DNA of 59,108 nucleotides from Macrostomum lignano (taxonomy: Eukaryota): the NCBI GenBank assembly GCA_002269645.1, contig NIVC01002625.1, positions 1 to 59,108 on the forward strand, read 5' to 3'. Numbering within the stretch: the first letter of the stretch is position 1; every line of letters starts with the position of its first letter. Below are positions 12,001-38,345 of this stretch, piece by piece. The notes under the pieces are model-generated. The model was given only the letters and a program-made list of their open reading frames with translations. It had not been told where the DNA came from and made no database searches. Both the position numbers and the translations under genes were made by a program.

Positions 12001-15000
12001 ACCTTGAATTGATCGTCTTCGAATCGGCGCTCCGCTCTTGCAATGTCGCGGCGAGCGCGCTCATCGCGACGTCGTCGTTCGCGGCGACGGTGGCTCACGA
12101 GCTCTTCTTGACGCGCGGCTTCTCGCTCTCGCTCCCGCTCTGGCGCCTTCAACTCGTCTTCTTTGCGCATTGGAGGCAGATCCTCTTCGATCTCGCTGGC
12201 CTCGCGATCTTCTAATACTTTGTCGTCGAACAGGTCTATCTGGTGTCGCACGTCCTCGTCTACCAGTACTTCTTCGTCGGCCTGAACAATCTCGTCGACC
12301 TTGAATTGATCGTCTTCGAATCGGCGCTCCGCTCTTGCAATGTCGCGGCGAGCGCGCTCATCGCGACGTCGTCGTTCGCGGCGACGGTGGCTCACGAGCT
12401 CTTCTTGACGCGCGGCTTCTCGCTCTCGCTCCCGCTCTGGCGCCTTCAACTCGTCTTCTTTGCGCATTGGAGGCAGATCCTCTTCGATCTCGCTGGCCTC
12501 GCGATCTTCTAATACTTTGTCGTCGAACAGGTCTATCTGGTGTCGCACGTCCTCGTCTACCAGTACTTCTTCGTCGGCCTGAACAATCTCGTCGACCTTG
12601 AATTGATCGTCTTCGAATCGGCGCTCCGCCTTGCAATGTCGCGGCGAGCGCGCTCATCGCGACGTCGTCGTTCGCGGCGACGGTGGCTCACGAGCTCTTC
12701 TTGACGCGCGGCTTCTCGCTCTCGCTCCCGCTCTGGCGCCTTCAACTCGTCTTCTTTGCGCATTGGAGGCAGATCCTCTTCGATCTCGCTGGCCTCGCGA
12801 TCTTCTAATACTTTGTCGTCGAACAGGTCTATCTGGTGTCGCACGTCCTCGTCTACCTACTTCTTCGTCGGCCTGAACAATCTCGTCGACCTTGAATTGA
12901 TCGTCTTCGAATCGGCGCTCCGCTCTTGCAATGTCGCGGCGAGCGCGCTCATCGCGACGTCGTCGTTCGCGGCGACGGTGGCTCACGAGCTCTTCTTGAC
13001 GCGCGGCTTCTCGCTCTCGCTCCCGCTCTGGCGCCTTCAACTCGTCTTCTTTGCGCATTGGAGGCAGATCCTCTTCGATCTCGCTGGCCTCGCGATCTTC
13101 TAATACTTTGTCGTCGAACAGGTCTATCTGGTGTCGCACGTCCTCGTCTACCAGTACTTCTTCGTCGGCCTGAACAATCTCGTCGACCTTGAATTGATCG
13201 TCTTCGAATCGGCGCTCCGCTCTTGCAATGTCGCGGCGAGCGCGCTCATCGCGACGTCGTCGTTCGCGGCGACGGTGGCTCACGAGCTCTTCTTGACGCG
13301 CGGCTTCTCGCTCTCGCTCCCGCTCTGGCGCCTTCAACTCGTCTTCTTTGCGCATTGGAGGCAGATCCTCTTCGATCTCGCTGGCCTCGCGATCTTCTAA
13401 TACTTTGTCGTCGAACAGGTCTATCTGGTGTCGCACGTCCTCGTCTACCAGTACTTCTTCGTCGGCCTGAACAATCTCGTCGACCTTGAATTGATCGTCT
13501 TCGAATCGGCGCTCCGCTCTTGCAATGTCGCGGCGAGCGCGCTCATCGCGACGTCGTCGTTCGCGGCGACGGTGGCTCACGAGCTCTTCTTGACGCGCGG
13601 CTTCTCGCTCTCGCTCCCGCTCTGGCGCCTTCAACTCGTCTTCTTTGCGCATTGGAGGCAGATCCTCTTCGATCTCGCTGGCCTCGCGATCTTCTAATAC
13701 TTTGTCGTCGAACAGGTCTATCTGGTGTCGCACGTCCTCGTCTACCAGTACTTCTTCGTCGGCCTGAACAATCTCGTCGACCTTGAATTGATCGTCTTCG
13801 AATCGGCGCTCCGCTCTTGCAATGTCGCGGCGAGCGCGCTCATCGCGACGTCGTCGTTCGCGGCGACGGTGGCTCACGAGCTCTTCTTGACGCGCGGCTT
13901 CTCGCTCTCGCTCCCGCTCTGGCGCCTTCAACTCGTCTTCTTTGCGCATTGGAGGCAGATCCTCTTCGATCTCGCTGGCCTCGCGATCTTCTAATACTTT
14001 GTCGTCGAACAGGTCTATCTGGTGTCGCACGTCCTCGTCTACCAGTACTTCTTCGTCGGCCTGAACAATCTCGTCGACCTTGAATTGATCGTCTTCGAAT
14101 CGGCGCTCCGCTCTTGCAATGTCGCGGCGAGCGCGCTCATCGCGACGTCGTCGTTCGCGGCGACGGTGGCTCACGAGCTCTTCTTGACGCGCGGCTTCTC
14201 GCTCTCGCTCCCGCTCTGGCGCCTTCAACTCGTCTTCTTTGCGCATTGGAGGCAGATCCTCTTCGATCTCGCTGGCCTCGCGATCTTCTAATACTTTGTC
14301 GTCGAACAGGTCTATCTGGTGTCGCACGTCCTCGTCTACCAGTACTTCTTCGTCGGCCTGAACAATCTCGTCGACCTTGAATTGATCGTCTTCGAATCGG
14401 CGCTCCGCTCTTGCAATGTCGCGGCGAGCGCGCTCATCGCGACGTCGTCGTTCGCGGCGACGGTGGCTCACGAGCTCTTCTTGACGCGCGGCTTCTCGCT
14501 CTCGCTCCCGCTCTGGCGCCTTCAACTCGTCTTCTTTGCGCATTGGAGGCAGATCCTCTTCGATCTCGCTGGCCTCGCGATCTTCTAATACTTTGTCGTC
14601 GAACAGGTCTATCTGGTGTCGCACGTCCTCGTCTACCAGTACTTCTTCGTCGGCCTGAACAATCTCGTCGACCTTGAATTGATCGTCTTCGAATCGGCGC
14701 TCCGCTCTTGCAATGTCGCGGCGAGCGCGCTCATCGCGACGTCGTCGTTCGCGGCGACGGTGGCTCACGAGCTCTTCTTGACGCGCGGCTTCTCGCTCTC
14801 GCTCCCGCTCTGGCGCCTTCAACTCGTCTTCTTTGCGCATTGGAGGCAGATCCTCTTCGATCTCGCTGGCCTCGCGATCTTCTAATACTTTGTCGTCGAA
14901 CAGGTCTATCTGGTGTCGCACGTCCTCGTCTACCAGTACTTCTTCGTCGGCCTGAACAATCTCGTCGACCTTGAATTGATCGTCTTCGAATCGGCGCTCC

Positions 15001-18000
15001 GCCTTGCAATGTCGCGGCGAGCGCGCTCATCGCGACGTCGTCGTTCGCGGCGACGGTGGCTCACGAGCTCTTCTTGACGCGCGGCTTCTCGCTCTCGCTC
15101 CCGCTCTGGCGCCTTCAACTCGTCTTCTTTGCGCATTGGAGGCAGATCCTCTTCGATCTCGCTGGCCTCGCGATCTTCTAATACTTTGTCGTCGAACAGG
15201 TCTATCTGGTGTCGCACGTCCTCGTCTACCAGTACTTCTTCGTCGGCCTGAACAATCTCGTCGACCTTGAATTGATCGTCTTCGAATCGGCGCTCCGCTC
15301 TTGCAATGTCGCGGCGAGCGCGCTCATCGCGACGTCGTCGTTCGCGGCGACGGTGGCTCACGAGCTCTTCTTGACGCGCGGCTTCTCGCTCTCGCTCCCG
15401 CTCTGGCGCCTTCAACTCGTCTTCTTTGCGCATTGGAGGCAGATCCTCTTCGATCTCGCTGGCCTCGCGATCTTCTAATACTTTGTCGTCGAACAGGTCT
15501 ATCTGGTGTCGCACGTCCTCGTCTACCAGTACTTCTTCGTCGGCCTGAACAATCTCGTCGACCTTGAATTGATCGTCTTCGAATCGGCGCTCCGCCTTGC
15601 AATGTCGCGGCGAGCGCGCTCATCGCGACGTCGTCGTTCGCGGCGACGGTGGCTCACGAGCTCTTCTTGACGCGCGGCTTCTCGCTCTCGCTCCCGCTCT
15701 GGCGCCTTCAACTCGTCTTCTTTGCGCATTGGAGGCAGATCCTCTTCGATCTCGCTGGCCTCGCGATCTTCTAATACTTTGTCGTCGAACAGGTCTATCT
15801 GGTGTCGCACGTCCTCGTCTACCAGTACTTCTTCGTCGGCCTGAACAATCTCGTCGACCTTGAATTGATCGTCTTCGAATCGGCGCTCCGCCTTGCAATG
15901 TCGCGGCGAGCGCGCTCATCGCGACGTCGTCGTTCGCGGCGACGGTGGCTCACGAGCTCTTCTTGACGCGCGGCTTCTCGCTCTCGCTCCCGCTCTGGCG
16001 CCTTCAACTCGTCTTCTTTGCGCATTGGAGGCAGATCCTCTTCGATCTCGCTGGCCTCGCGATCTTCTAATACTTTGTCGTCGAACAGGTCTATCTGGTG
16101 TCGCACGTCCTCGTCTACCAGTACTTCTTCGTCGGCCTGAACAATCTCGTCGACCTTGAATTGATCGTCTTCGAATCGGCGCTCCGCTCTTGCAATGTCG
16201 CGGCGAGCGCGCTCATCGCGACGTCGTCGTTCGCGGCGACGGTGGCTCACGAGCTCTTCTTGACGCGCGGCTTCTCGCTCTCGCTCCCGCTCTGGCGCCT
16301 TCAACTCGTCTTCTTTGCGCATTGGAGGCAGATCCTCTTCGATCTCGCTGGCCTCGCGATCTTCTAATACTTTGTCGTCGAACAGGTCTATCTGGTGTCG
16401 CACGTCCTCGTCTACCAGTACTTCTTCGTCGGCCTGAACAATCTCGTCGACCTTGAATTGATCGTCTTCGAATCGGCGCTCCGCTCTTGCAATGTCGCGG
16501 CGAGCGCGCTCATCGCGACGTCGTCGTTCGCGGCGACGGTGGCTCACGAGCTCTTCTTGACGCGCGGCTTCTCGCTCTCGCTCCCGCTCTGGCGCCTTCA
16601 ACTCGTCTTCTTTGCGCATTGGAGGCAGATCCTCTTCGATCTCGCTGGCCTCGCGATCTTCTAATACTTTGTCGTCGAACAGGTCTATCTGGTGTCGCAC
16701 GTCCTCGTCTACCAGTACTTCTTCGTCGGCCTGAACAATCTCGTCGACCTTGAATTGATCGTCTTCGAATCGGCGCTCCGCTCTTGCAATGTCGCGGCGA
16801 GCGCGCTCATCGCGACGTCGTCGTTCGCGGCGACGGTGGCTCACGAGCTCTTCTTGACGCGCGGCTTCTCGCTCTCGCTCCCGCTCTGGCGCCTTCAACT
16901 CGTCTTCTTTGCGCATTGGAGGCAGATCCTCTTCGATCTCGCTGGCCTCGCGATCTTCTAATACTTTGTCGTCGAACAGGTCTATCTGGTGTCGCACGTC
17001 CTCGTCTACCAGTACTTCTTCGTCGGCCTGAACAATCTCGTCGACCTTGAATTGATCGTCTTCGAATCGGCGCTCCGCTCTTGCAATGTCGCGGCGAGCG
17101 CGCTCATCGCGACGTCGTCGTTCGCGGCGACGGTGGCTCACGAGCTCTTCTTGACGCGCGGCTTCTCGCTCTCGCTCCCGCTCTGGCGCCTTCAACTCGT
17201 CTTCTTTGCGCATTGGAGGCAGATCCTCTTCGATCTCGCTGGCCTCGCGATCTTCTAATACTTTGTCGTCGAACAGGTCTATCTGGTGTCGCACGTCCTC
17301 GTCTACCAGTACTTCTTCGTCGGCCTGAACAATCTCGTCGACCTTGAATTGATCGTCTTCGAATCGGCGCTCCGCCTTGCAATGTCGCGGCGAGCGCGCT
17401 CATCGCGACGTCGTCGTTCGCGGCGACGGTGGCTCACGAGCTCTTCTTGACGCGCGGCTTCTCGCTCTCGCTCCCGCTCTGGCGCCTTCAACTCGTCTTC
17501 TTTGCGCATTGGAGGCAGATCCTCTTCGATCTCGCTGGCCTCGCGATCTTCTAATACTTTGTCGTCGAACAGGTCTATCTGGTGTCGCACGTCCTCGTCT
17601 ACCAGTACTTCTTCGTCGGCCTGAACAATCTCGTCGACCTTGAATTGATCGTCTTCGAATCGGCGCTCCGCTCTTGCAATGTCGCGGCGAGCGCGCTCAT
17701 CGCGACGTCGTCGTTCGCGGCGACGGTGGCTCACGAGCTCTTCTTGACGCGCGGCTTCTCGCTCTCGCTCCCGCTCTGGCGCCTTCAACTCGTCTTCTTT
17801 GCGCATTGGAGGCAGATCCTCTTCGATCTCGCTGGCCTCGCGATCTTCTAATACTTTGTCGTCGAACAGGTCTATCTGGTGTCGCACGTCCTCGTCTACC
17901 AGTACTTCTTCGTCGGCCTGAACAATCTCGTCGACCTTGAATTGATCGTCTTCGAATCGGCGCTCCGCTCTTGCAATGTCGCGGCGAGCGCGCTCATCGC

Positions 18001-21000
18001 GACGTCGTCGTTCGCGGCGACGGTGGCTCACGAGCTCTTCTTGACGCGCGGCTTCTCGCTCTCGCTCCCGCTCTGGCGCCTTCAACTCGTCTTCTTTGCG
18101 CATTGGAGGCAGATCCTCTTCGATCTCGCTGGCCTCGCGATCTTCTAATACTTTGTCGTCGAACAGGTCTATCTGGTGTCGCACGTCCTCGTCTACCAGT
18201 ACTTCTTCGTCGGCCTGAACAATCTCGTCGACCTTGAATTGATCGTCTTCGAATCGGCGCTCCGCTCTTGCAATGTCGCGGCGAGCGCGCTCATCGCGAC
18301 GTCGTCGTTCGCGGCGACGGTGGCTCACGAGCTCTTCTTGACGCGCGGCTTCTCGCTCTCGCTCCCGCTCTGGCGCCTTCAACTCGTCTTCTTTGCGCAT
18401 TGGAGGCAGATCCTCTTCGATCTCGCTGGCCTCGCGATCTTCTAATACTTTGTCGTCGAACAGGTCTATCTGGTGTCGCACGTCCTCGTCTACCAGTACT
18501 TCTTCGTCGGCCTGAACAATCTCGTCGACCTTGAATTGATCGTCTTCGAATCGGCGCTCCGCTCTTGCAATGTCGCGGCGAGCGCGCTCATCGCGACGTC
18601 GTCGTTCGCGGCGACGGTGGCTCACGAGCTCTTCTTGACGCGCGGCTTCTCGCTCTCGCTCCCGCTCTGGCGCCTTCAACTCGTCTTCTTTGCGCATTGG
18701 AGGCAGATCCTCTTCGATCTCGCTGGCCTCGCGATCTTCTAATACTTTGTCGTCGAACAGGTCTATCTGGTGTCGCACGTCCTCGTCTACCAGTACTTCT
18801 TCGTCGGCCTGAACAATCTCGTCGACCTTGAATTGATCGTCTTCGAATCGGCGCTCCGCTCTTGCAATGTCGCGGCGAGCGCGCTCATCGCGACGTCGTC
18901 GTTCGCGGCGACGGTGGCTCACGAGCTCTTCTTGACGCGCGGCTTCTCGCTCTCGCTCCCGCTCTGGCGCCTTCAACTCGTCTTCTTTGCGCATTGGAGG
19001 CAGATCCTCTTCGATCTCGCTGGCCTCGCGATCTTCTAATACTTTGTCGTCGAACAGGTCTATCTGGTGTCGCACGTCCTCGTCTACCAGTACTTCTTCG
19101 TCGGCCTGAACAATCTCGTCGACCTTGAATTGATCGTCTTCGAATCGGCGCTCCGCTCTTGCAATGTCGCGGCGAGCGCGCTCATCGCGACGTCGTCGTT
19201 CGCGGCGACGGTGGCTCACGAGCTCTTCTTGACGCGCGGCTTCTCGCTCTCGCTCCCGCTCTGGCGCCTTCAACTCGTCTTCTTTGCGCATTGGAGGCAG
19301 ATCCTCTTCGATCTCGCTGGCCTCGCGATCTTCTAATACTTTGTCGTCGAACAGGTCTATCTGGTGTCGCACGTCCTCGTCTACCAGTACTTCTTCGTCG
19401 GCCTGAACAATCTCGTCGACCTTGAATTGATCGTCTTCGAATCGGCGCTCCGCTCTTGCAATGTCGCGGCGAGCGCGCTCATCGCGACGTCGTCGTTCGC
19501 GGCGACGGTGGCTCACGAGCTCTTCTTGACGCGCGGCTTCTCGCTCTCGCTCCCGCTCTGGCGCCTTCAACTCGTCTTCTTTGCGCATTGGAGGCAGATC
19601 CTCTTCGATCTCGCTGGCCTCGCGATCTTCTAATACTTTGTCGTCGAACAGGTCTATCTGGTGTCGCACGTCCTCGTCTACCAGTACTTCTTCGTCGGCC
19701 TGAACAATCTCGTCGACCTTGAATTGATCGTCTTCGAATCGGCGCTCCGCTCTTGCAATGTCGCGGCGAGCGCGCTCATCGCGACGTCGTCGTTCGCGGC
19801 GACGGTGGCTCACGAGCTCTTCTTGACGCGCGGCTTCTCGCTCTCGCTCCCGCTCTGGCGCCTTCAACTCGTCTTCTTTGCGCATTGGAGGCAGATCCTC
19901 TTCGATCTCGCTGGCCTCGCGATCTTCTAATACTTTGTCGTCGAACAGGTCTATCTGGTGTCGCACGTCCTCGTCTACCAGTACTTCTTCGTCGGCCTGA
20001 ACAATCTCGTCGACCTTGAATTGATCGTCTTCGAATCGGCGCTCCGCTCTTGCAATGTCGCGGCGAGCGCGCTCATCGCGACGTCGTCGTTCGCGGCGAC
20101 GGTGGCTCACGAGCTCTTCTTGACGCGCGGCTTCTCGCTCTCGCTCCCGCTCTGGCGCCTTCAACTCGTCTTCTTTGCGCATTGGAGGCAGATCCTCTTC
20201 GATCTCGCTGGCCTCGCGATCTTCTAATACTTTGTCGTCGAACAGGTCTATCTGGTGTCGCACGTCCTCGTCTACCAGTACTTCTTCGTCGGCCTGAACA
20301 ATCTCGTCGACCTTGAATTGATCGTCTTCGAATCGGCGCTCCGCCTTGCAATGTCGCGGCGAGCGCGCTCATCGCGACGTCGTCGTTCGCGGCGACGGTG
20401 GCTCACGAGCTCTTCTTGACGCGCGGCTTCTCGCTCTCGCTCCCGCTCTGGCGCCTTCAACTCGTCTTCTTTGCGCATTGGAGGCAGATCCTCTTCGATC
20501 TCGCTGGCCTCGCGATCTTCTAATACTTTGTCGTCGAACAGGTCTATCTGGTGTCGCACGTCCTCGTCTACCAGTACTTCTTCGTCGGCCTGAACAATCT
20601 CGTCGACCTTGAATTGATCGTCTTCGAATCGGCGCTCCGCTCTTGCAATGTCGCGGCGAGCGCGCTCATCGCGACGTCGTCGTTCGCGGCGACGGTGGCT
20701 CACGAGCTCTTCTTGACGCGCGGCTTCTCGCTCTCGCTCCCGCTCTGGCGCCTTCAACTCGTCTTCTTTGCGCATTGGAGGCAGATCCTCTTCGATCTCG
20801 CTGGCCTCGCGATCTTCTAATACTTTGTCGTCGAACAGGTCTATCTGGTGTCGCACGTCCTCGTCTACCAGTACTTCTTCGTCGGCCTGAACAATCTCGT
20901 CGACCTTGAATTGATCGTCTTCGAATCGGCGCTCCGCTCTTGCAATGTCGCGGCGAGCGCGCTCATCGCGACGTCGTCGTTCGCGGCGACGGTGGCTCAC

Positions 21001-27000: not shown

Positions 27001-30000
27001 GAGGCAGATCCTCTTCGATCTCGCTGGCCTCGCGATCTTCTAATACTTTGTCATCGTCGAACAGGTCTATCTGGTGTCGCACGTCCTCGTCTACCAGTAC
27101 TTCTTCGTCGGCCTGAACAATCTCGTCGACCTTGAATTGATCGTCTTCGAATCGGCGCTCCGCTCTTGCAATGTCGCGGCGAGCGCGCTCATCGCGACGT
27201 CGTCGTTCGCGGCGACGGTGGCTCACGAGCTCTTCTGACGCGCGGCTTCTCGCTCTTCGCTCGCTCTGGCGCCTTCAACTCGTCTTCTTTGCGCATTGGA
27301 GGCAGATCCTCTTCGATCTCGCTGGCCTCGCGATCTTCTAATACTTTGTCGTCGAACAGGTCTATCTGGTGTCGCACGTCCTCGTCTACCAGTACTTCTT
27401 CGTCGGCCTGAACAATCTCGTCGACCTTGAATTGATCGTCTTCGAATCGGCGCTCCGCTCTTGCAATGTCGCGGCGAGCGCGCTCATCGCGACGTCGTCG
27501 TTCGCGGCGACGGTGGCTCACGAGCTCTTCTGACGCGCGGCTTCTCGCTCTCGCTCCCGCTCTGGCGCCTTCAACTCGTCTTCTTTGCGCATTGGAGGCA
27601 GATCCTCTTCGATCTCGCTGGCCTCGCGATCTTCTAATACTTTGTCGTCGAACAGGTCTATCTGGTGTCGCACGTCCTCGTCTACCAGTACTTCTTCGTC
27701 GGCCTGAACAATCTCGTCGACCTTGAATTGATCGTCTTCGAATCGGCGCTCCGCTCTTGCAATGTCGCGGCGAGCGCGCTCATCGCGACGTCGTCGTTCG
27801 CGGCGACGGTGGCTCACGAGCTCTTCTGACGCGCGGCTTCTCGCTCTCGCTCGCTCTGGCGCCTTCAACTCGTCTTCTTTGCGCATTGGAGGCAGATCCT
27901 CTTCGATCTCGCTGGCCTCGCGATCTTCTAATACTTTGTCGTCGAACAGGTCTATCTGGTGTCGCACGTCCTCGTCTACCAGTACTTCTTCGTCGGCCTG
28001 AACAATCTCGTCGACCTTGAATTGATCGTCTTCGAATCGGCGCTCCGCTCTTGCAATGTCGCGGCGAGCGCGCTCATCGCGACGTCGTCGTTCGCGGCGA
28101 CGGTGGCTCACGAGCTCTTCTGACGCGCGGCTTCTCGCTCTCGCTCGCTCTGGCGCCTTCAACTCGTCTTCTTTGCGCATTGGAGGCAGCTCCTCTTCGA
28201 TCTCGCTGGCCTCGCGATCTTCTAATACTTTGTCGTCGAACAGGTCTATCTGGTGTCGCACGTCCTCGTCTACCAGTACTTCTTCGTCGGCCTGAACAAT
28301 CTCGTCGACCTTGAATTGATCGTCTTCGAATCGGCGCTCCGCTCTTGCAATGTCGCGGCGAGCGCGCTCATCGCGACGTCGTCGTTCGCGGCGACGGTGG
28401 CTCACGAGCTCTTCTGACGCGCGGCTTCTCGCTCTCGCTCTGCTCTGGCGCCTTCAACTCGTCTTCTTTGCGCATTGGAGGCAGATCCTCTTCGATCTCG
28501 CTGGCCTCGCGATCTTCTAATACTTTGTCGTCGAACAGGTCTATCTGGTGTCGCACGTCCTCGTCTACCAGTACTTCTTCGTCGGCCTGAACAATCTCGT
28601 CGACCTTGAATTGATCGTCTTCGAATCGGCGCTCCGCTCTTGCAATGTCGCGGCGAGCGCGCTCATCGCGACGTCGTCGTTCGCGGCGACGGTGGCTCAC
28701 GAGCTCTTCTGACGCGCGGCTTCTCGCTTCGCTCGCTCTGGCGCCTTCAACTCGTCTTCTTTGCGCATTGGAGGCAGATCCTCTTCGATCTCGCTGGCCT
28801 CGCGATCTTCTAATACTTTGTCGTCGAACAGGTCTATCTGGTGTCGCACGTCCTCGTCTACCAGTACTTCTTCGTCGGCCTGAACAATCTCGTCGACCTT
28901 GAATTGATCGTCTTCGAATCGGCGCTCCGCTCTTGCAATGTCGCGGCGAGCGCGCTCATCGCGACGTCGTCGTTCGCGGCGACGGTGGCTCACGAGCTCT
29001 TCTGACGCGCGGCTTCTCGCTCTCGCTCGCTCTGGCGCCTTCAACTCGTCTTCTTTGCGCATTGGAGGCAGCTCCTCTTCGATCTCGCTGGCCTCGCGAT
29101 CTTCTAATACTTTGTCGTCGAACAGGTCTATCTGGTGTCGCACGTCCTCGTCTACCAGTACTTCTTCGTCGGCCTGAACAATCTCGTCGACCTTGAATTG
29201 ATCGTCTTCGAATCGGCGCTCCGCTCTTGCAATGTCGCGGCGAGCGCGCTCATCGCGACGTCGTCGTTCGCGGCGACGGTGGCTCACGAGCTCTTCTGGA
29301 CGCGCGGCTTCTCGCTCTTCTGGCGCCTTCAACTCGTCTTCTTTGCGCATTGGAGGCAGTCCTCTTGATCTCGCTGGCCTCGCGATCTTCTAATACTTTG
29401 CGTCGTCGAACAGGTCTATCTGGTGTCGCACGTCCTCGTCTACCAGTACTTCTTCGTCGGCCTGAACAATCTCGTCGACCTTGAATTGATCGTCTTCGAA
29501 TCGGCGCTCCGCTCTTGCAATGTCGCGGCGAGCGCGCTCATCGCGACGTCGTCGTTCGCGGCGACGGTGGCTCACGAGCTCTTCTGGACGCGCGGCTTCT
29601 CGCTCTCGCTCGCTCTGGCGCCTTCAACTCGTCTTCTTTGCGCATTGGAGGCAGATCCTCTTCGATCTCGCTGGCCTCGCGATCTTCTAATACTTTGTCG
29701 TCGAACAGGTCTATCTGGTGTCGCACGTCCTCGTCTACCAGTACTTCTTCGTCGGCCTGAACAATCTCGTCGACCTTGAATTGATCGTCTTCGAATCGGC
29801 GCTCCGCTCTTGCAATGTCGCGGCGAGCGCGCTCATCGCGACGTCGTCGTTCGCGGCGACGGTGGCTCACGAGCTCTTCTGGACGCGCGGCTTCTCGCTC
29901 TTCTGGCGCCTTCAACTCGTCTTCTTTGCGCATTGGAGGCAGTTCCTCTTCGATCTCGCTGGCCTCGCGATCTTCTAATACTTTGTCGTCGAACAGGTCT

Positions 30001-33000
30001 ATCTGGTGTCGCACGTCCTCGTCTACCAGTACTTCTTCGTCGGCCTGAACAATCTCGTCGACCTTGAATTGATCGTCTTCGAATCGGCGCTCCGCTCTTG
30101 CAATGTCGCGGCGAGCGCGCTCATCGCGACGTCGTCGTTCGCGGCGACGGTGGCTCACGAGCTCTTCTGACGCGCGGCTTCTAGCTTCGCTCGCTCTGGC
30201 GCCTTCAACTCGTCTTCTTTGCGCATTGGAGGCAGCTCCTCTTCGATCTCGCTGGCCTCGCGATCTTCTAATACTTTGTCGTCGAACAGGTCTATCTGGT
30301 GTCGCACGTCCTCGTCTACCAGTACTTCTTCGTCGGCCTGAACAATCTCGTCGACCTTGAATTGATCGTCTTCGAATCGGCGCTCCGCTCTTGCAATGTC
30401 GCGGCGAGCGCGCTCATCGCGACGTCGTCGTTCGCGGCGACGGTGGCTCACGAGCTCTTCTGGACGCGCGGCTTCTAGCTTTCGCTCTGGCTCTGGCGCC
30501 TTCAACTCGTCTTCTTTGCGCATTGGAGGCAGATCCTCTTCGATCTCGCTGGCCTCGCGATCTTCTAATACTTTGTCGTCGAACAGGTCTATCTGGTGTC
30601 GCACGTCCTCGTCTACCAGTACTTCTTCGTCGGCCTGAACAATCTCGTCGACCTTGAATTGATCGTCTTCGAATCGGCGCTCCGCTCTTGCAATGTCGCG
30701 GCGAGCGCGCTCATCGCGACGTCGTCGTTCGCGGCGACGGTGGCTCACGAGCTCTTCTGGACGCGCGGCTTCTAGCTTTCGCTCTGGCTCTGGCGCCTTC
30801 AACTCGTCTTCTTTGCGCATTGGAGGCAGATCCTCTTCGATCTCGCTGGCCTCGCGATCTTCTAATACTTTGTCGTCGAACAGGTCTATCTGGTGTCGCA
30901 CGTCCTCGTCTACCAGTACTTCTTCGTCGGCCTGAACAATCTCGTCGACCTTGAATTGATCGTCTTCGAATCGGCGCTCCGCTCTTGCAATGTCGCGGCG
31001 AGCGCGCTCATCGCGACGTCGTCGTTCGCGGCGACGGTGGCTCACGAGCTCTTCTGGAGACGCGGCTTCTCGCTCTTCTGGCGCCTTCAACGTCTTCTTT
31101 GATGAATTAGTTCTTTCGATCTCGCTGGCCTCGCGCTTCTAATACTTTGTCATCGATCAAATCTATTGGTGTCGCACGTCCTCGTCTACCAGTACTTCTT
31201 CGTCGGCCTGAACAATCTCGTCGACCTTGAATTGATCGTCTTCGAATCGGCGCTCCGCTCTTGCAATGTCGCGGCGAGCGCGCTCATCGCGACGTCGTCG
31301 TTCGCGGCGACGGTGGCTCACGAGCTCTTCTGGAGCTCGGCTTCTCGCTCTTTCGCTCTCTTAACTTTTCTTTGATGATTAGTTCTTTCGATCTCGCTGG
31401 CCTCGCGCTTCTAAACTTGTCATCGATCAAATCTATCTGGTGTCGCACGTCCTCGTCTACCAGTACTTCTTCGTCGGCCTGAACAATCTCGTCGACCTTG
31501 AATTGATCGTCTTCGAATCGGCGCTCCGCTCTTGCAATGTCGCGGCGAGCGCGCTCATCGCGACGTCGTCGTTCGCGGCGACGGTGGCTCACGAGCTCTT
31601 CTGGACGCGCGGCTTCTCGCTCTCGCTCGCTCTGGCGCCTTCAACTCGTCTTCTTTGCGCATTGGAGGCAGATCCTCTTCGATCTCGCTGGCCTCGCGAT
31701 CTTCTAATACTTTGTCGTCGAACAGGTCTATCTGGTGTCGCACGTCCTCGTCTACCAGTACTTCTTCGTCGGCCTGAACAATCTCGTCGACCTTGAATTG
31801 ATCGTCTTCGAATCGGCGCTCCGCTCTTGCAATGTCGCGGCGAGCGCGCTCATCGCGACGTCGTCGTTCGCGGCGACGGTGGCTCACGAGCTCTTCTGGA
31901 GACTCGGCTTCTCGCTCTTTCGCCTTCAACTCGTCTTCTTTGATTGAAGTTCTTTCGATCTCGCTGGCCTCGCGCTTCTAATACTTTGTCATCGATCAAC
32001 ATCATTGGTGTCGCACGTCCTCGTCTACCAGTACTTCTTCGTCGGCCTGAACAATCTCGTCGACCTTGAATTGATCGTCTTCGAATCGGCGCTCCGCTCT
32101 TGCAATGTCGCGGCGAGCGCGCTCATCGCGACGTCGTCGTTCGCGGCGACGGTGGCTCACGAGCTCTTCTGGAGACGCGGATTCTCGCTCTTTCGCCTTA
32201 ACTTTTCTTTGATGATAAAAATTAGTTCTTTTCGATCTCGCTGGCCTCGCGCTTCTAAACTTGTCATCGATCAAATCTATCTGGTGTCGCACGTCCTCGT
32301 CTACCAGTACTTCTTCGTCGGCCTGAACAATCTCGTCGACCTTGAATTGATCGTCTTCGAATCGGCGCTCCGCTCTTGCAATGTCGCGGCGAGCGCGCTC
32401 ATCGCGACGTCGTCGTTCGCGGCGACGGTGGCTCACGAGCTCTTCTGGAGACTCGGATTCTCGCTCTTTCGCTCTTCAACTTTTCTTTGATGATTAGTTC
32501 TTTCGATCTCGCTGGCCTCGCGCTTCTACTGTCATCGATCAAATCTATCTGGTGTCGCACGTCCTCGTCTACCAGTACTTCTTCGTCGGCCTGAACAATC
32601 TCGTCGACCTTGAATTGATCGTCTTCGAATCGGCGCTCCGCTCTTGCAATGTCGCGGCGAGCGCGCTCATCGCGACGTCGTCGTTCGCGGCGACGGTGGC
32701 TCACGAGCTCTTCTGGACGCGCGGCTTCTAGCTTTCGCTCTGGCTCTGGCGCCTTCAACTCGTCTTCTTTGCGCATTGGAGGCAGATCCTCTTCGATCTC
32801 GCTGGCCTCGCGATCTTCTAATACTTTGTCGTCGAACAGGTCTATCTGGTGTCGCACGTCCTCGTCTACCAGTACTTCTTCGTCGGCCTGAACAATCTCG
32901 TCGACCTTGAATTGATCGTCTTCGAATCGGCGCTCCGCTCTTGCAATGTCGCGGCGAGCGCGCTCATCGCGACGTCGTCGTTCGCGGCGACGGTGGCTCA

Positions 33001-36000
33001 CGAGCTCTTCTGGAGACTCGGATTCTCGCTCTCGCTCGCTCTTAACTTTTCTTTGATGATAAAAATTAGTTCTTTCGATCTCGCTGGCCTCGCGCGCTTC
33101 TAACTCTGTCGTCAACATCATTGGTGTCGCACGTCCTCGTCTACCAGTACTTCTTCGTCGGCCTGAACAATCTCGTCGACCTTGAATTGATCGTCTTCGA
33201 ATCGGCGCTCCGCTCTTGCAATGTCGCGGCGAGCGCGCTCATCGCGACGTCGTCGTTCGCGGCGACGGTGGCTCACGAGCTCTTCTGGAGACTCGGATCT
33301 CGCTCTTTCGCTCTTAACTTTTCTTTGATGATAAAAATTAGTTCTTTTGATCTCGCTGGCCTCGCGCGCTTCTAACTCTGCATCATCGATCAAATCTAGT
33401 TGGTGTCGCACGTCCTCGTCTACCAGTACTTCTTCGTCGGCCTGAACAATCTCGTCGACCTTGAATTGATCGTCTTCGAATCGGCGCTCCGCTCTTGCAA
33501 TGTCGCGGCGAGCGCGCTCATCGCGACGTCGTCGTTCGCGGCGACGGTGGCTCACGAGCTCTTCTGGACGCGCGGCTTCTAGCTTCGCTCTGGCTCTGGC
33601 GCCTTCAACTCGTCTTCTTTGCGCATTGGAGGCAGCTCCTCTTCGATCTCGCTGGCCTCGCGATCTTCTAATACTTTGTCGTCGAACAGGTCTATCTGGT
33701 GTCGCACGTCCTCGTCTACCAGTACTTCTTCGTCGGCCTGAACAATCTCGTCGACCTTGAATTGATCGTCTTCGAATCGGCGCTCCGCTCTTGCAATGTC
33801 GCGGCGAGCGCGCTCATCGCGACGTCGTCGTTCGCGGCGACGGTGGCTCACGAGCTCTTCTGGACGCGCGGCTTCTAGCTTTCGCTCTGGCTCTGGCGCC
33901 TTCAACTCGTCTTCTTTGCATTGGAGGCAGCTCTTCGATCTCGCTGGCCTCGCGATCTTCTAATACTTTGTCGTCGAACAGGTCTATCTGGTGTCGCACG
34001 TCCTCGTCTACCAGTACTTCTTCGTCGGCCTGAACAATCTCGTCGACCTTGAATTGATCGTCTTCGAATCGGCGCTCCGCTCTTGCAATGTCGCGGCGAG
34101 CGCGCTCATCGCGACGTCGTCGTTCGCGGCGACGGTGGCTCACGAGCTCTTCTGGAGACTCGGAATCTCGCTCTTTCGCTCTTAACTTTTCTTTGATGAT
34201 AAAAATTAGTTCTTTTTGGATCTCGCTGGCCTCGCGCGCTTCTAACTCTGCGTCATCGATCAAATCCAGTTGGTGTCGCACGTCCTCGTCTACCAGTACT
34301 TCTTCGTCGGCCTGAACAATCTCGTCGACCTTGAATTGATCGTCTTCGAATCGGCGCTCCGCTCTTGCAATGTCGCGGCGAGCGCGCTCATCGCGACGTC
34401 GTCGTTCGCGGCGACGGTGGCTCACGAGCTCTTCTGGAGACTCGGATTCTCGCTCTTTCGCTTTTAACTTTTCTTTGATGATAAAAATTAGTTCTTTTTG
34501 GATCTCGCTGGCCTCGCGCGCTTCTAACTCTGCGTCATCGATCAAATCTAGTTGGTGTCGCACGTCCTCGTCTACCAGTACTTCTTCGTCGGCCTGAACA
34601 ATCTCGTCGACCTTGAATTGATCGTCTTCGAATCGGCGCTCCGCTCTTGCAATGTCGCGGCGAGCGCGCTCATCGCGACGTCGTCGTTCGCGGCGACGGT
34701 GGCTCACGAGCTCTTCTGGAGACGCGGATTCTCGCTCTTTCTGGCGCCTTCAACTTCTTCTTTGATTGGAGGCAGTTCTTTCGATCTCGCTGGCCTCGCG
34801 ATCTTCTAATACTTTGCGTCATCGATCAAATCTGGTGTCGCACGTCCTCGTCTACCAGTACTTCTTCGTCGGCCTGAACAATCTCGTCGACCTTGAATTG
34901 ATCGTCTTCGAATCGGCGCTCCGCTCTTGCAATGTCGCGGCGAGCGCGCTCATCGCGACGTCGTCGTTCGCGGCGACGGTGGCTCACGAGCTCTTCTGGA
35001 CGCGCGGATCTCGCTCTTTCGCCTTCAACTTTTCTTTGATTAGTTCTTTCGATCTCGCTGGCCTCGCGATCTTCTAATACTTTGTCGTCGAACAGGTCTA
35101 TCTGGTGTCGCACGTCCTCGTCTACCAGTACTTCTTCGTCGGCCTGAACAATCTCGTCGACCTTGAATTGATCGTCTTCGAATCGGCGCTCCGCTCTTGC
35201 AATGTCGCGGCGAGCGCGCTCATCGCGACGTCGTCGTTCGCGGCGACGGTGGCTCACGAGCTCTTCTGGAGCGCGGCTTCTCGCTCTCGCTCTTCTGGCG
35301 CCTTCAACTCGTCTTCTTTGCGCATTGGAGGCAGTTCTTCGATCTCGCTGGCCTCGCGATCTTCTAATACTTTGTCGTCGAACAGGTCTATCTGGTGTCG
35401 CACGTCCTCGTCTACCAGTACTTCTTCGTCGGCCTGAACAATCTCGTCGACCTTGAATTGATCGTCTTCGAATCGGCGCTCCGCTCTTGCAATGTCGCGG
35501 CGAGCGCGCTCATCGCGACGTCGTCGTTCGCGGCGACGGTGGCTCACGAGCTCTTCTGGAGACTCGGATTCTCGCTCTTTCGCTTTTAACTTTTCTTTGA
35601 TGATAAAAATTAGTTCTTTTTGGATCTCGCTGGCCTCGCGCGCTTCTAACTCTGCGTCATCGATCAAATCCAGTTGGTGTCGCACGTCCTCGTCTACCAG
35701 TACTTCTTCGTCGGCCTGAACAATCTCGTCGACCTTGAATTGATCGTCTTCGAATCGGCGCTCCGCTCTTGCAATGTCGCGGCGAGCGCGCTCATCGCGA
35801 CGTCGTCGTTCGCGGCGACGGTGGCTCACGAGCTCTTCTGGACGCGCGGCTTCTCGCTTTCGCTCTGGCTCTGGCGCCTTCAACTCGTCTTCTTTGCGCA
35901 TTGGAGGCAGCTCCTCTTCGATCTCGCTGGCCTCGCGATCTTCTAATACTTTGTCGTCGAACAGGTCTATCTGGTGTCGCACGTCCTCGTCTACCAGTAC

Positions 36001-37400
36001 TTCTTCGTCGGCCTGAACAATCTCGTCGACCTTGAATTGATCGTCTTCGAATCGGCGCTCCGCTCTTGCAATGTCGCGGCGAGCGCGCTCATCGCGACGT
36101 CGTCGTTCGCGGCGACGGTGGCTCACGAGCTCTTCTGGAGACTCGGATTCTCGCTCTTTCGCTCTTAACTTTTCTTTGATGATAAAAATTAGTTCTTTTT
36201 GGATCTCGCTGGCCTCGCGCGCTTCTAACTCTGTCATCGATCAAATCAGTTGGTGTCGCACGTCCTCGTCTACCAGTACTTCTTCGTCGGCCTGAACAAT
36301 CTCGTCGACCTTGAATTGATCGTCTTCGAATCGGCGCTCCGCTCTTGCAATGTCGCGGCGAGCGCGCTCATCGCGACGTCGTCGTTCGCGGCGACGGTGG
36401 CTCACGAGCTCTTCTGGACGCGCGGCTTCTCGCTTCGCTCGCTCTGGCGCCTTCAACTCGTTTCTTTGATTGATTAGTTCCTCTTCGATCTCGCTGGCCT
36501 CGCGATCTTCTAATACTTTGTCGTCGAACAGGTCTATCTGGTGTCGCACGTCCTCGTCTACCAGTACTTCTTCGTCGGCCTGAACAATCTCGTCGACCTT
36601 GAATTGATCGTCTTCGAATCGGCGCTCCGCTCTTGCAATGTCGCGGCGAGCGCGCTCATCGCGACGTCGTCGTTCGCGGCGACGGTGGCTCACGAGCTCT
36701 TCTGGACGCGCGGCTTCTCTCGCTCTGGCTCTCGCCTTCAACTCGTCTTCTTTGCGCATGGATTAGTTCTCTTCGATCTCGCTGGCCTCGCGCTTCTAAT
36801 ACTTGTCATCGAACATCATCTGGTGTCGCACGTCCTCGTCTACCAGTACTTCTTCGTCGGCCTGAACAATCTCGTCGACCTTGAATTGATCGTCTTCGAA
36901 TCGGCGCTCCGCTCTTGCAATGTCGCGGCGAGCGCGCTCATCGCGACGTCGTCGTTCGCGGCGACGGTGGCTCACGAGCTCTTCTGGACGCGCGGCTTCT
37001 CGCTCTCGCTCGCTCTGGCGCCTTCAACTCGTCTTCTTTGCGCATTGGAGGCAGCTCCTCTTCGATCTCGCTGGCCTCGCGATCTTCTAATACTTTGTCG
37101 TCGAACAGGTCTATCTGGTGTCGCACGTCCTCGTCTACCAGTACTTCTTCGTCGGCCTGAACAATCTCGTCGACCTTGAATTGATCGTCTTCGAATCGGC
37201 GCTCCGCTCTTGCAATGTCGCGGCGAGCGCGCTCATCGCGACGTCGTCGTTCGCGGCGACGGTGGCTCACGAGCTCTTCTGGAGACTCGGATTCTCGCTC
37301 TTTCGCTTTTAACTTTTCTTTGATGATAAAAATTAGTTCTTTTTGGATCTCGCTGGCCTCTGCGCACTCTCTCAGTACTCCAGTTCGTGTCGCACGTCCT
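1..37400 (-). CDS. Putative giant repetitive E/R/D-rich protein region (99-aa repeat), partial at both ends; frameshifts probably consensus errors
   Basis: The minus frame reads VRHQIDLFDDKVLEDREASEIEEDLPPMRKEDELKAPEREREREAARQEELVSHRRRERRRRDERARRDIARAERRFEDDQFKVDEIVQADEEVLVDED with no stop in the unit. Clean unit lengths (297/291/282) are all multiples of 3, and variants differ by synonymous or conservative changes in this frame. The ORF-track M starts are internal GTG codons, not real starts. Confidence 0.72.
2666..10028. repeat. Sub-region containing 291-bp units (in-frame loss of Leu-Val)
   Basis: gtctacttcttcgtcgg replaces gtctaccagtacttcttcgtcgg at ~2886, 3177, 4644, 6124 and 9957. Unit spacing is 291 (2666-2957-3248; 4425-4716; 5904-6195; 9737-10028). 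The protein reads EEVDEDV instead of EEVLVDEDV. Confidence 0.85.
20272..24267 (-). CDS. Longest uninterrupted array-1 segment (1331 codons, ~13 repeats); a fragment, not a separate gene
   Basis: ORF track. Bounded by a 1-bp deletion at ~20345 (ccgccttgca) and a 1-bp deletion at ~24277 (tcttctgacg). Similar fragments: 17303-20263, 12654-14921, 8178-10241, 4156-6705. Confidence 0.6.
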   Translation of the reverse strand: MSHRRRERRRRDERARRDIARAERRFEDDQFKVDEIVQADEEVLVDEDVRHQIDLFDDKVLEDREASEIEEELPPMRKEDELKAPEREREREAARQEELVSHRRRERRRRDERARRDIARAERRFEDDQFKVDEIVQADEEVLVDEDVRHQIDLFDDKVLEDREASEIEEDLPPMRKEDELKAPEREREREAARQEELVSHRRRERRRRDERARRDIARAERRFEDDQFKVDEIVQADEEVLVDEDVRHQIDLFDDKVLEDREASEIEEELPPMRKEDELKAPEREREREAARQEELVSHRRRERRRRDERARRDIARAERRFEDDQFKVDEIVQADEEVLVDEDVRHQIDLFDDKVLEDREASEIEEDLPPMRKEDELKAPEREREREAARQEELVSHRRRERRRRDERARRDIARAERRFEDDQFKVDEIVQADEEVLVDEDVRHQIDLFDDKVLEDREASEIEEDLPPMRKEDELKAPEREREREAARQEELVSHRRRERRRRDERARRDIARAERRFEDDQFKVDEIVQADEEVLVDEDVRHQIDLFDDKVLEDREASEIEEDLPPMRKEDELKAPEREREREAARQEELVSHRRRERRRRDERARRDIARAERRFEDDQFKVDEIVQADEEVLVDEDVRHQIDLFDDKVLEDREASEIEEDLPPMRKEDELKAPEREREREAARQEELVSHRRRERRRRDERARRDIARAERRFEDDQFKVDEIVQADEEVLVDEDVRHQIDLFDDKVLEDREASEIEEDLPPMRKEDELKAPEREREREAARQEELVSHRRRERRRRDERARRDIARAERRFEDDQFKVDEIVQADEEVLVDEDVRHQIDLFDDKVLEDREASEIEEDLPPMRKEDELKAPEREREREAARQEELVSHRRRERRRRDERARRDIARAERRFEDDQFKVDEIVQADEEVLVDEDVRHQIDLFDDKVLEDREASEIEEDLPPMRKEDELKAPEREREREAARQEELVSHRRRERRRRDERARRDIARAERRFEDDQFKVDEIVQADEEVLVDEDVRHQIDLFDDKVLEDREASEIEEDLPPMRKEDELKAPEREREREAARQEELVSHRRRERRRRDERARRDIARAERRFEDDQFKVDEIVQADEEVLVDEDVRHQIDLFDDKVLEDREASEIEEDLPPMRKEDELKAPEREREREAARQEELVSHRRRERRRRDERARRDIARAERRFEDDQFKVDEIVQADEEVLVDEDVRHQIDLFDDKVLEDREASEIEEDLPPMRKEDELKAPEREREREAARQEELVSHRRRERRRRDERARRDIARRSADSKTINSRSTRLFRPTKKYW
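30455..35880. repeat. Units of a second 297-bp allele (A-prime: KAPEPERKLEAARPEE)
   Basis: ggacgcgcggcttctagctttcgctctggctctggcgcc occurs cleanly at ~30.46, 30.76, 32.71 and 33.86 kb, and nearly so at ~33.57 and 35.84 kb. In frame in ORFs 30155-31090 and 32399-33121. Confidence 0.8.
33000..37360. repeat. Units of a 282-bp (94-aa) variant B interspersed with 297-bp units
   Basis: Spacing 34270 to 34552 is 282 bp. The variable part reads QLDLIDDAELEAREASEIQKELIFIIKEKLKAKERESESPEE. ORFs 33814-34707 and 35254-36237 stay open across A-type/B boundaries. Confidence 0.85.
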
Positions 37401-38345
37401 CGTCTACCAGTACTTCTTCGTCGGCCTTGAATCTCGTCTTCTGCGCTCTTCTTGAATCGGCGCCGCTCTTCGAGTCGAGCGCGCTCTTCGCGACGTCGTC
37501 GCTTCGGCGCACGCTCGCTCTACCAGTCGCTTCTTTCGGCCTCGATCTCTCGCCTGAACTTCTCTTCTCGCGCGCTCTCTTGCATCGGCACGCTCTCTCG
37601 TCGTCTTTGCGATCTTCGACGCTCTTTCAAGCTCTCACGTCGTCTCGGTTCTCTTCTCGATCTTCGTGGCCTCGAAAATCTCGCGCAGATCTTCTCTGCA
37701 TCTGGTGTCACGTCTTCGAATCGGCGAGCTCTCTTCGCGACGCTCTTGCGCTCGAGCTCTCACGCTCGCTCTACGGTGGCTCGCTCTTCTCGGCTTCTTA
37801 TTCGCTCTTTCAACTCAATCTTCTTCTTCTCGCGGGCGCATCTGGTGCGTCTCGTCGTCGGCCTGAACAATCTCGTCGACCTTGAATTGATCGTCTTCGA
37901 ATCGGCGCTCCGCTCTTGCGCGGCGAGCGCGCTCACGCGACTCGTCGTTCGGCGACGGTGGCTCGAGCTCTTCTGGGATCGGATTCTTCTTCGCTTTTAA
38001 CTCGTCTTTTCTCGCTCTCGCGCGCTTCTAACTCTCTCATCCAGTTGGTGTCGCACGTCCTCGTCTGGGCCTGAACAATCTCTCGCTGAATTGATCTCTT
38101 CGAATCGCGCTCCGCTCTTGCAAGCGGCGAGCGCGCTCATCGCCGTCGTCCGGCGACGGTGGTCGAGCTCTTCTGCGGCTTCTTCTTCGCTTTCTAACTC
38201 GAAAAGTCTTTTCTCCTCTCGCCGCCAACTCTTCTCCTGCCAGCTTACAGCTCTCTCGAATCGCCTCTTTGACACTCTTCGTCGAATCTTGTCTTCGTCT
38301 CTCAAACAGTCGCGTAAAGCCAAGTCGTCTCTTTTCTTTTATCTC
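37360..38345. other. Scrambled junction between the arrays (probable consensus/polishing artefact over an unresolved linker)
   Basis: Built of short shuffled pieces of the array-1 unit (e.g. gtcgcacgtcctcgtctaccagtacttcttcgtcggcc, gcctgaacaatctcgtcgaccttgaattgatcg). It grades from ~38200 into degraded array-2 pieces (ttctcctctcgccgcca). No stable period. Confidence 0.65.

Follow-up and report, generated by a model that had tools for sequence, protein, structure and literature searches.

At one locus of Macrostomum lignano, a free-living flatworm, neighbouring units of a tandem array share a 162-bp block without a single difference, silent sites included, beside a remainder in which two versions of the unit, A and B, have diverged heavily. 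Clean units keep lengths that preserve the reading frame, and unit types form a spatial gradient along the array, from B-like at its upstream junction to uniform A in its centre. We consider it probable that a coding-type array present in two versions has evolved in concert here, and that units whose sequence alternates between A and B are blends introduced by the assembly. Adaptive diversification is not needed to explain the pattern.

Two tandem arrays, their unit types and their relatives

The window, that is, the whole stretch of DNA analysed, is 59,108 bp long and is the complete contig NIVC01002625.1 of GCA_002269645.1, the Mlig_3_7 draft assembly of M. lignano. It holds nothing but tandem repeat, in one array with a 297-bp unit and another with a 234-bp unit:

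1–37301, minus strand (the sense strand): array 1, with 297-bp (99-codon) units arranged head to tail in about 127 copies, delimited by TRF (period 297) and unit splitting
37280–38345, minus strand: array junction, garbled, with about four B-like units of the 297 family and one decayed unit of the 234 family
38343–59108, minus strand: array 2, about 89 units of 234 bp (78 codons), delimited by TRF

The two arrays have the same sense strand, and the minus-strand translation of both is a charged protein. Neither is complete, array 1 continuing past the contig end at position 1 and array 2 running off the contig end; 70 of the 80 anchored units of array 2 are identical. The assembly combines PacBio CLR reads, Canu 1.4 and a Pilon polish, whose input was Bowtie2-mapped Illumina reads and STAR-mapped RNA-seq (PMC5730564). 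M. lignano is a neopolyploid in which most sequence exists as about three paralogous copies, and its assemblies can be expected to contain collapsed or mosaic stretches (PMC10733133).

We cut array 1 into minus-strand units, each starting at GAAGAGCTCGTG. Its upstream edge is a zone of mixed unit types, in which the following features can be placed (the mosaic units are given further below):

30168–37279, minus strand: mixed zone at the 5′ (upstream) edge of array 1, 25 units, comprising 10 A-type, 5 B-type and 10 A/B mosaics
35974–36135, minus strand: constant block of a clean A unit, 162 bp, EELVSH...DVRH; the same 162 bp opens each unit of the zone
35839–35973, minus strand: A cassette, 45 codons, QIDLFDDKVLEDREASEIEEELPPMRKEDELKAPEPERKREAARP, GC 0.56
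35557–35838, minus strand: clean B unit, 282 bp, 94 codons, with cassette QLDLIDDAELEAREASEIQKELIFIIKEKLKAKERESESP, GC 0.43
34153–34716, minus strand: two more clean B units, 282 bp each
36136–36414 and 33286–33564, minus strand: near-B units of 279 bp
30461–31054, minus strand: two clean A2 units of 297 bp, tail PEPERKLEAARP
32714–33010, minus strand: a further clean A2 unit

Credible cassette types, both in frame and well supported, number two: A, with minor subtypes, and B. Read from the 5′ junction, array 1 passes from the garbled B-like junction into the zone of interspersed B and A, then into A2 units, a mix of A3 and A1, a run of 36 A1 units and, near the contig end, A1 units together with a form carrying a 6-bp deletion. 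The 36 A1 units (297 bp) are fully identical, and about 100 central units are uniform. A scan of the whole window finds B-specific strings in the 32.2–37.3 kb interval only. The A cassette ends in a GAGCGR-type subrepeat with slippage variants, and the SNP and slippage variants that separate the A subtypes are confined to the last third of the unit. B-like edges around an A centre are what concerted evolution classically yields, with new variants taking over the middle of an array and old ones persisting at its ends. Of the two edges here, the 5′ junction is B-like but garbled by deletions, and the B-like unit at the 3′ terminus is known solely from the protein of an ML2 gene model.

Among about 15 billion proteins, relatives were found only in M. 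lignano gene models of the older ML2 assembly. ML2 drew on the same PacBio reads as the present assembly, which makes its models an independent assembly and not independent data. One of them, A0A1I8F5B1, has a B-type junction (DVRHQLDLIDDAE) as well as A-type sequence. A second, A0A1I8HPW6 (3445 aa), holds about 21 A units, including an EEVDED form without two codons; its last unit has a B-like cassette start (...DVRHQLDLLDEA) and a diverged constant part. Beyond the array this model has unique sequence that leads into a WIF domain, after which come a membrane span and a tyrosine-kinase domain; the three together make an RYK-like receptor, which the gene model unites with the array in one protein. 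Used as a query, the unique linker that precedes the WIF domain gave no match, and an exact-DNA scan of metagenome and prokaryote genome collections gave none either, as expected for a flatworm.

The constant block and the diverged cassette

The constant block runs from GAAGAG to GTGCGACAC and encodes 54 codons (EELVSH...DVRH). Exactly the same 162 bp, with no substitution and no indel, is present in 25 of 25 units from 37279 down to 30168. The identity extends well beyond the mixed zone: every unit from 37279 to 20416 carries the block unchanged, as do 96 of the 127 units of array 1 overall, and outside that interval the differences in the block are deletions only, except in the noisy first kb of the contig. 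Between A2 and B types the shared stretch reaches 167 bp, gaining CCA upstream and CA downstream.

We compared a clean A unit (36135–35839, 297 bp) with the clean B unit next to it (35838–35557, 282 bp). The constant block shows 0 differences in 162 bp, whereas 35 of 120 aligned bases differ in the remainder (13, 9 and 13 by codon position), which also contains in-frame indels of 3 and 12 bp (15 bp in total). Within this variable part lies an island of 18 identical bases (CGCGAGGCCAGCGAGATC) that encodes REASEI. Nei–Gojobori estimates for the variable part are pS 0.48 and pN 0.24, with dN/dS 0.39. The block has 37 synonymous sites, at which about 18 silent differences would be expected were it of equal age; none is observed (P ~ 3e-11), and the hypergeometric probability that no difference lands in the block is 4e-15. 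Chance is ruled out. With zero silent change in the block against a pS of 0.48 immediately adjacent, uniform divergence cannot be the source of the pattern, and what is needed is homogenisation at sub-unit scale or the replacement of a segment, with its boundary at the block edge.

An earlier note on this DNA had described the block as identical even at silent sites across three unit forms, A, A-prime and B, next to a segment that is heavily diverged around REASEI. The identity holds for clean A and B units, and the divergence is as described; A-prime, by contrast, is a frame-broken mosaic and probably not real sequence. The note had also proposed sub-unit conversion or cassette exchange anchored on the block. 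That proposal survives as homogenisation or segment replacement ending at the block edge, but not as a cassette system that serves diversification.

On our preferred reading, concerted evolution of a two-version array, the mixed zone would be a transition zone on the upstream side of a very long coding-type array in which A units (99 codons) and B units (94 codons) are interspersed. The array would evolve in concert through unequal sister-chromatid or allelic exchange and through gene conversion between misaligned units, and the exchanges between units would resolve inside the perfectly identical block of 162–167 bp. The 3′ 40% of the unit, with 29% A/B divergence, indels and a shift in GC, would be too dissimilar to pair and would be carried along passively as a "cassette". 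The B-like form, seen at the 5′ junction and in the 3′-terminal unit, would be the older one left at the edges after the A cassette had swept the centre, and the interspersed order of A and B over 7 kb would be the footprint of exchanges within the constant block. Both the mechanism of exchange and a B-to-A direction of spread are inferred.

One observation sits awkwardly with such a mechanism. The edge of the block is abrupt, with 8 differences in the first 18 bp beyond it, and conversion tracts with scattered ends would rather produce a gradient.

Among biological explanations, the main rival is one recent segment replacement. A single ectopic recombination with a diverged paralogous array elsewhere in the genome would have swapped the 3′ 40% of a unit, and the chimeric unit would then have been amplified locally, the block being identical because the event is young. 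This would account for the step from 0 differences to 8 in 18 bp and for the GC shift of the cassette (0.43 in B, 0.55–0.56 in A), and the roughly three paralogous copies of the genome sequence speak in its favour. However, a cassette that appears B-like at both edges of the array fits an old resident form and not a recent import, the window contains no donor, and in protein databases the full B cassette occurs only in the window's own products, the ML2 gene model P0003 carrying the first 13 residues of a B-type junction. We regard the replacement as unlikely. Import of the B cassette from array 2 was considered separately and rejected, the two having no similarity.

Mosaic units and the reality of the block

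The ten remaining units of the mixed zone alternate between A and B sequence in their variable part:

31055–32713, minus strand: mosaic cluster, with unit starts 31330, 31601, 32169, 32445 and 32713 and lengths of 268–276 bp, around the A unit 31896
unit starts 33285, 34996, 35266, 36702 and 36984, minus strand: the remaining mosaics

Each switches between A and B 4–12 times over 51 informative columns, in about 135 bp; the mosaics are frame-broken, and at many positions they agree with neither A nor B. In eight of them the length is 268–280 bp, below both A (297) and B (282), and a unit shorter than both parents is not obtainable by simple exchange between A and B. Missing bases are concentrated where the types differ: 121 are deleted in the variable part as against 0 in the 162-bp block, and 80 of the 121 fall on the 55 columns that differ among clean unit types.

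The same signature recurs at three further places. A units of 293–296 bp at 24–30 kb have lost bases exactly at the sites where A1 and A2 differ (GG/CA, A/C). The constant block is scrambled at about 11.0–11.2 kb, where two zones meet. The array junction, set against four B units, gives 801 matches, 24 mismatches, 303 deleted and 69 inserted bases; its origin by evolutionary decay was rejected, since 303 deletions against 24 mismatches is not a mutational spectrum.

For A-prime and the other odd cassettes, the most likely origin is the blending of mixed reads in the consensus, not conversion. Blends would arise where A-bearing and B-bearing molecules contribute to one pile of reads, the possible sources being collapsed paralogous copies that differ in their A/B order, or reads placed in the wrong register. 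In a toy consensus, in which noisy A and B reads were simulated and called by simple majority rule, a 70:30 mix returned pure units and a 50:50 mix returned mosaics with 10–15 switches. The bias towards deletions was not recovered by this majority-rule simulation; it depends on the algorithm that computed the real consensus. In graph-based consensus of long reads, nodes backed by less than half of the reads are penalised, and such a penalty would favour skipping the columns at which A and B differ. Three of the mosaics (32713, 32445 and 31601) resemble one another in pattern and could represent a real third type garbled by errors.

If the assembly has blended cassettes, the zero divergence of the block might be an artefact as well, with correction, consensus or polishing pooled over about 127 units and their paralogous copies having erased B-linked variants. 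The pipeline is prone to such erasure, and consensus blending is demonstrable in the zone, at the junction and at about 11.0–11.2 kb. Single-unit variants at the level of SNPs nevertheless survived in the variable part, where variants private to one or a few units are kept at unit positions 225, 269–270, 277, 281 and 296 (position 225 has T, G or A variants in 10 of 106 A units); in nt 1–129 of the block no single-unit SNP variant occurs among about 106 A units. Mixing of unit types elsewhere in the array leaves a deletion-garbled consensus, of which the block shows no trace in any of the 25 units of the zone. Uncorrected 1-bp deletions recur, among them the loss of A at position 72 in seven otherwise perfect units, and show that the array was not rewritten by polishing with pooled short reads; homogenisation by Pilon as the main cause was rejected on this ground. 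A divergence of 29% is in any case more than pooling could conceal, even if a few SNPs were lost to it, and the contrast between block and cassette stands. Erasure therefore strikes us as an improbable origin for the block, which is probably invariant in reality, at least largely; a few rare B-linked SNPs within it could have been lost in Canu read correction.

The caveat that polishing with pooled reads might erase differences in the constant block had been raised in the earlier note. It pointed in the right direction but to the wrong step: short-read polishing barely acted, and the damage is long-read consensus blending that lies in the variable part and not in the constant block.

Coding character and comparable systems

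Several features of its sequence favour array 1 as protein-coding, or recently coding, rather than plain satellite. In all clean variants a single one of the six frames is free of stops (sense frame 0), and codon-position composition gives a chi-squared of 43–55 compared with about 6 in shuffles. Clean unit lengths are all multiples of 3 (297, 291, 288 and 282 bp, with 234 bp in array 2). It is the combination of frame-keeping lengths, one open frame, codon bias and dN/dS below 1 that favours coding. The alternative is non-coding satellite DNA with an incidentally open frame. In its favour, about 15% of the M. lignano genome is simple or tandem repeat (PMC5730564) and the contig consists of repeats throughout; four of the six frames of array 2 are open, and the units match nothing in Pfam, among PDB sequences or in Rfam. 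The single open frame of array 1 in every clean variant, its strong codon-type periodicity, the length differences in multiples of 3 and the low dN/dS all argue against an incidental frame, and we think satellite DNA very unlikely.

In an AlphaFold single-sequence model (mean pLDDT 79.7), the constant block is predicted to form a long helix. For the A cassette the prediction is a helix and then some 23 residues of low-confidence linker with prolines in it; for the B cassette it is a continuous helix. As charged helices are easily over-predicted, this difference between A and B is only a hint.

The earlier suggestion that the units might diversify a repeat protein, for antigenic variation or binding specificity, fares poorly. 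Constant and variable parts are indeed laid out as such an adaptive cassette-exchange system would have them, A and B are interspersed, and the predicted physical difference, a flexible proline-containing linker in A against a continuous helix in B, could in principle be put to use. But there are two credible cassettes only, the others being frame-broken blends; the window holds no donor repertoire, and about 100 central units are uniform. The animal is free-living, which leaves antigenic variation without a rationale, and with dN/dS at 0.39 positive selection is not indicated. We find adaptive diversification extremely unlikely. The resemblance to the silent-cassette systems of antigenic variation in pathogens is one of formal layout, a conserved anchor beside a variable segment; array 1, with its two cassettes, has neither a donor archive nor the logic of an expression site, and a free-living flatworm is under no immune pressure from a host. 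The case carries a caution, in that CLR-era assemblies of repeat-rich polyploids can fake cassette repertoires by consensus blending, a clean shared part next to a blended remainder mimicking a design of constant modules and variable cassettes.

In design, the nearest analogue is the Balbiani ring genes of Chironomus. These genes (BR1, BR2 and BR6) encode giant secretory proteins in very long, intron-poor arrays, whose units of a few hundred bp each have a constant part and a variable or subrepeat part, and whose unit types are kept alike by concerted evolution. A Balbiani ring gene is said to have been found, by Jackle et al. in 1982 and by Wieslander and Lendahl in 1983, to be built from two tandem types of major unit with a common origin. 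Array 1 is similar in that its units combine a constant with a variable part and the A tail is a subrepeat that varies by slippage. It differs in phylum and has no sequence similarity to Balbiani ring genes, and its E/R/D/K-rich predicted helices are unlike their Cys/Pro-rich secretory repeats.

Within the species, the giant adhesion protein Mlig-ap2 has a centre of 21 repeats of 255 aa followed by 25 repeats of 221 aa (PMC6410801). It shares with this locus the succession of two tandem arrays and shows that giant genes of this kind are real in M. lignano. Its units are far longer than the 99 and 78 aa found here, and the present repeats lack vWD, TIL and TSP domains. The possibility that our arrays are Mlig-ap1 or Mlig-ap2 was rejected because unit sizes and domains differ. 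With concerted arrays in general (rDNA, mucin VNTRs, satellites) array 1 has in common an identical centre, clustered or graded variants and edges that appear divergent; it departs from them in that homogenisation halts at a sharp boundary within the unit instead of covering the whole unit.

A bolder reading, which we rate as quite unlikely, joins both arrays into one giant gene for a chain of charged helices, in which exchange anchored on the block would mix mechanically different A and B cassettes and some mosaics would reflect true A/B heterozygosity between collapsed copies. Such a gene would exceed 19,000 codons in this contig alone. If this is right, paralogous copies and individuals would differ in the order of A and B and hence in the physical properties of the protein. 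The locus opens no new kind of system; it is a candidate for a previously undescribed giant repeat gene with two arrays in M. lignano, and a clear example of homogenisation that ends at a boundary within the repeat unit.

The 234-bp repeat and its junction with the 297-bp array

Two features describe the right-hand part of the contig, where array 1 (1–37301, minus strand, units of 297 bp) gives way to a second, shorter-unit repeat:

38343–59108, minus strand: array 2, about 89 copies of a 234-bp unit (78 codons), PDERGLLQEHEAFDKMYVYAEECVSW...
37280–38345: junction of arrays 1 and 2, a garble dominated by deletions

In array 2, 70 of the 80 anchored units are identical. Four of its six frames are free of stops, so the 5,600-residue 'ORFs' seen on either strand do not by themselves count as evidence; codon-type periodicity supports the frame on the minus strand. 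Measured against B units (the 282-bp type of array 1), the junction shows 24 mismatches versus 303 deleted bases, and holds a decayed 234-type unit running into a 297-type constant block, the 162-bp segment (EELVSH...DVRH) that opens array 1 units. Because this stretch is garbled by deletions, the adjacency of the two arrays depends on a poorly resolved consensus. Both contig ends (1–1000 and 56746–59108) are far noisier, with substitutions and indels resembling raw reads (for the right end, TRF reports 93% matches with 5% indels), as is typical of low coverage.

Probable consensus errors and unit variants within array 1

Seven otherwise perfect 297-bp units at 12405–20415 share a single-base deletion, the A at constant-block position 72, which breaks the frame in every case. 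This recurrent loss comes either from a systematic error in the consensus or from a variant hidden at that site, and shows that short-read polishing left the array unfixed. A larger defect lies further left:

about 11000–11220: unit whose constant block is scrambled, with local rearrangement and a loss of about 55 bp

It falls exactly where a uniform zone of A1 units (a subtype of the 297-bp A units) meets a zone of units with 6-bp deletions, and is likely a consensus glitch or mis-join. Across positions 1–11000, about 20 units carry deletions at constant-block positions 130–150, among them a recurrent in-frame loss of GTACTG (EEVLVDED to EEVDED) that gives 291-bp units, together with frame-broken 290- and 292-bp versions. 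Since the EEVDED form is also present in A0A1I8HPW6, a gene-model protein from ML2 (an older assembly of the same PacBio reads), a unit type two codons shorter is probably real close to the array's 3' part.

At 27236–29584, well beyond the B zone, units that are A-type in all other respects show faint signs of B-type sequence (GACGACGCAAAG within unit 29584; GACGATGACAAAG within unit 27235), suggesting that some reads piled up there carry B units.

A units predicted in frame with a RYK-like receptor

The ML2 gene model A0A1I8HPW6 (UniProt), which lies outside the window, is predicted to join a series of these A units in frame to a RYK-like receptor tyrosine kinase, with a WIF domain (4e-23), a membrane span and PK_Tyr (5e-54). 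The arrangement may be a gene-model fusion, or the receptor may be a real neighbour beyond position 1 of the contig.
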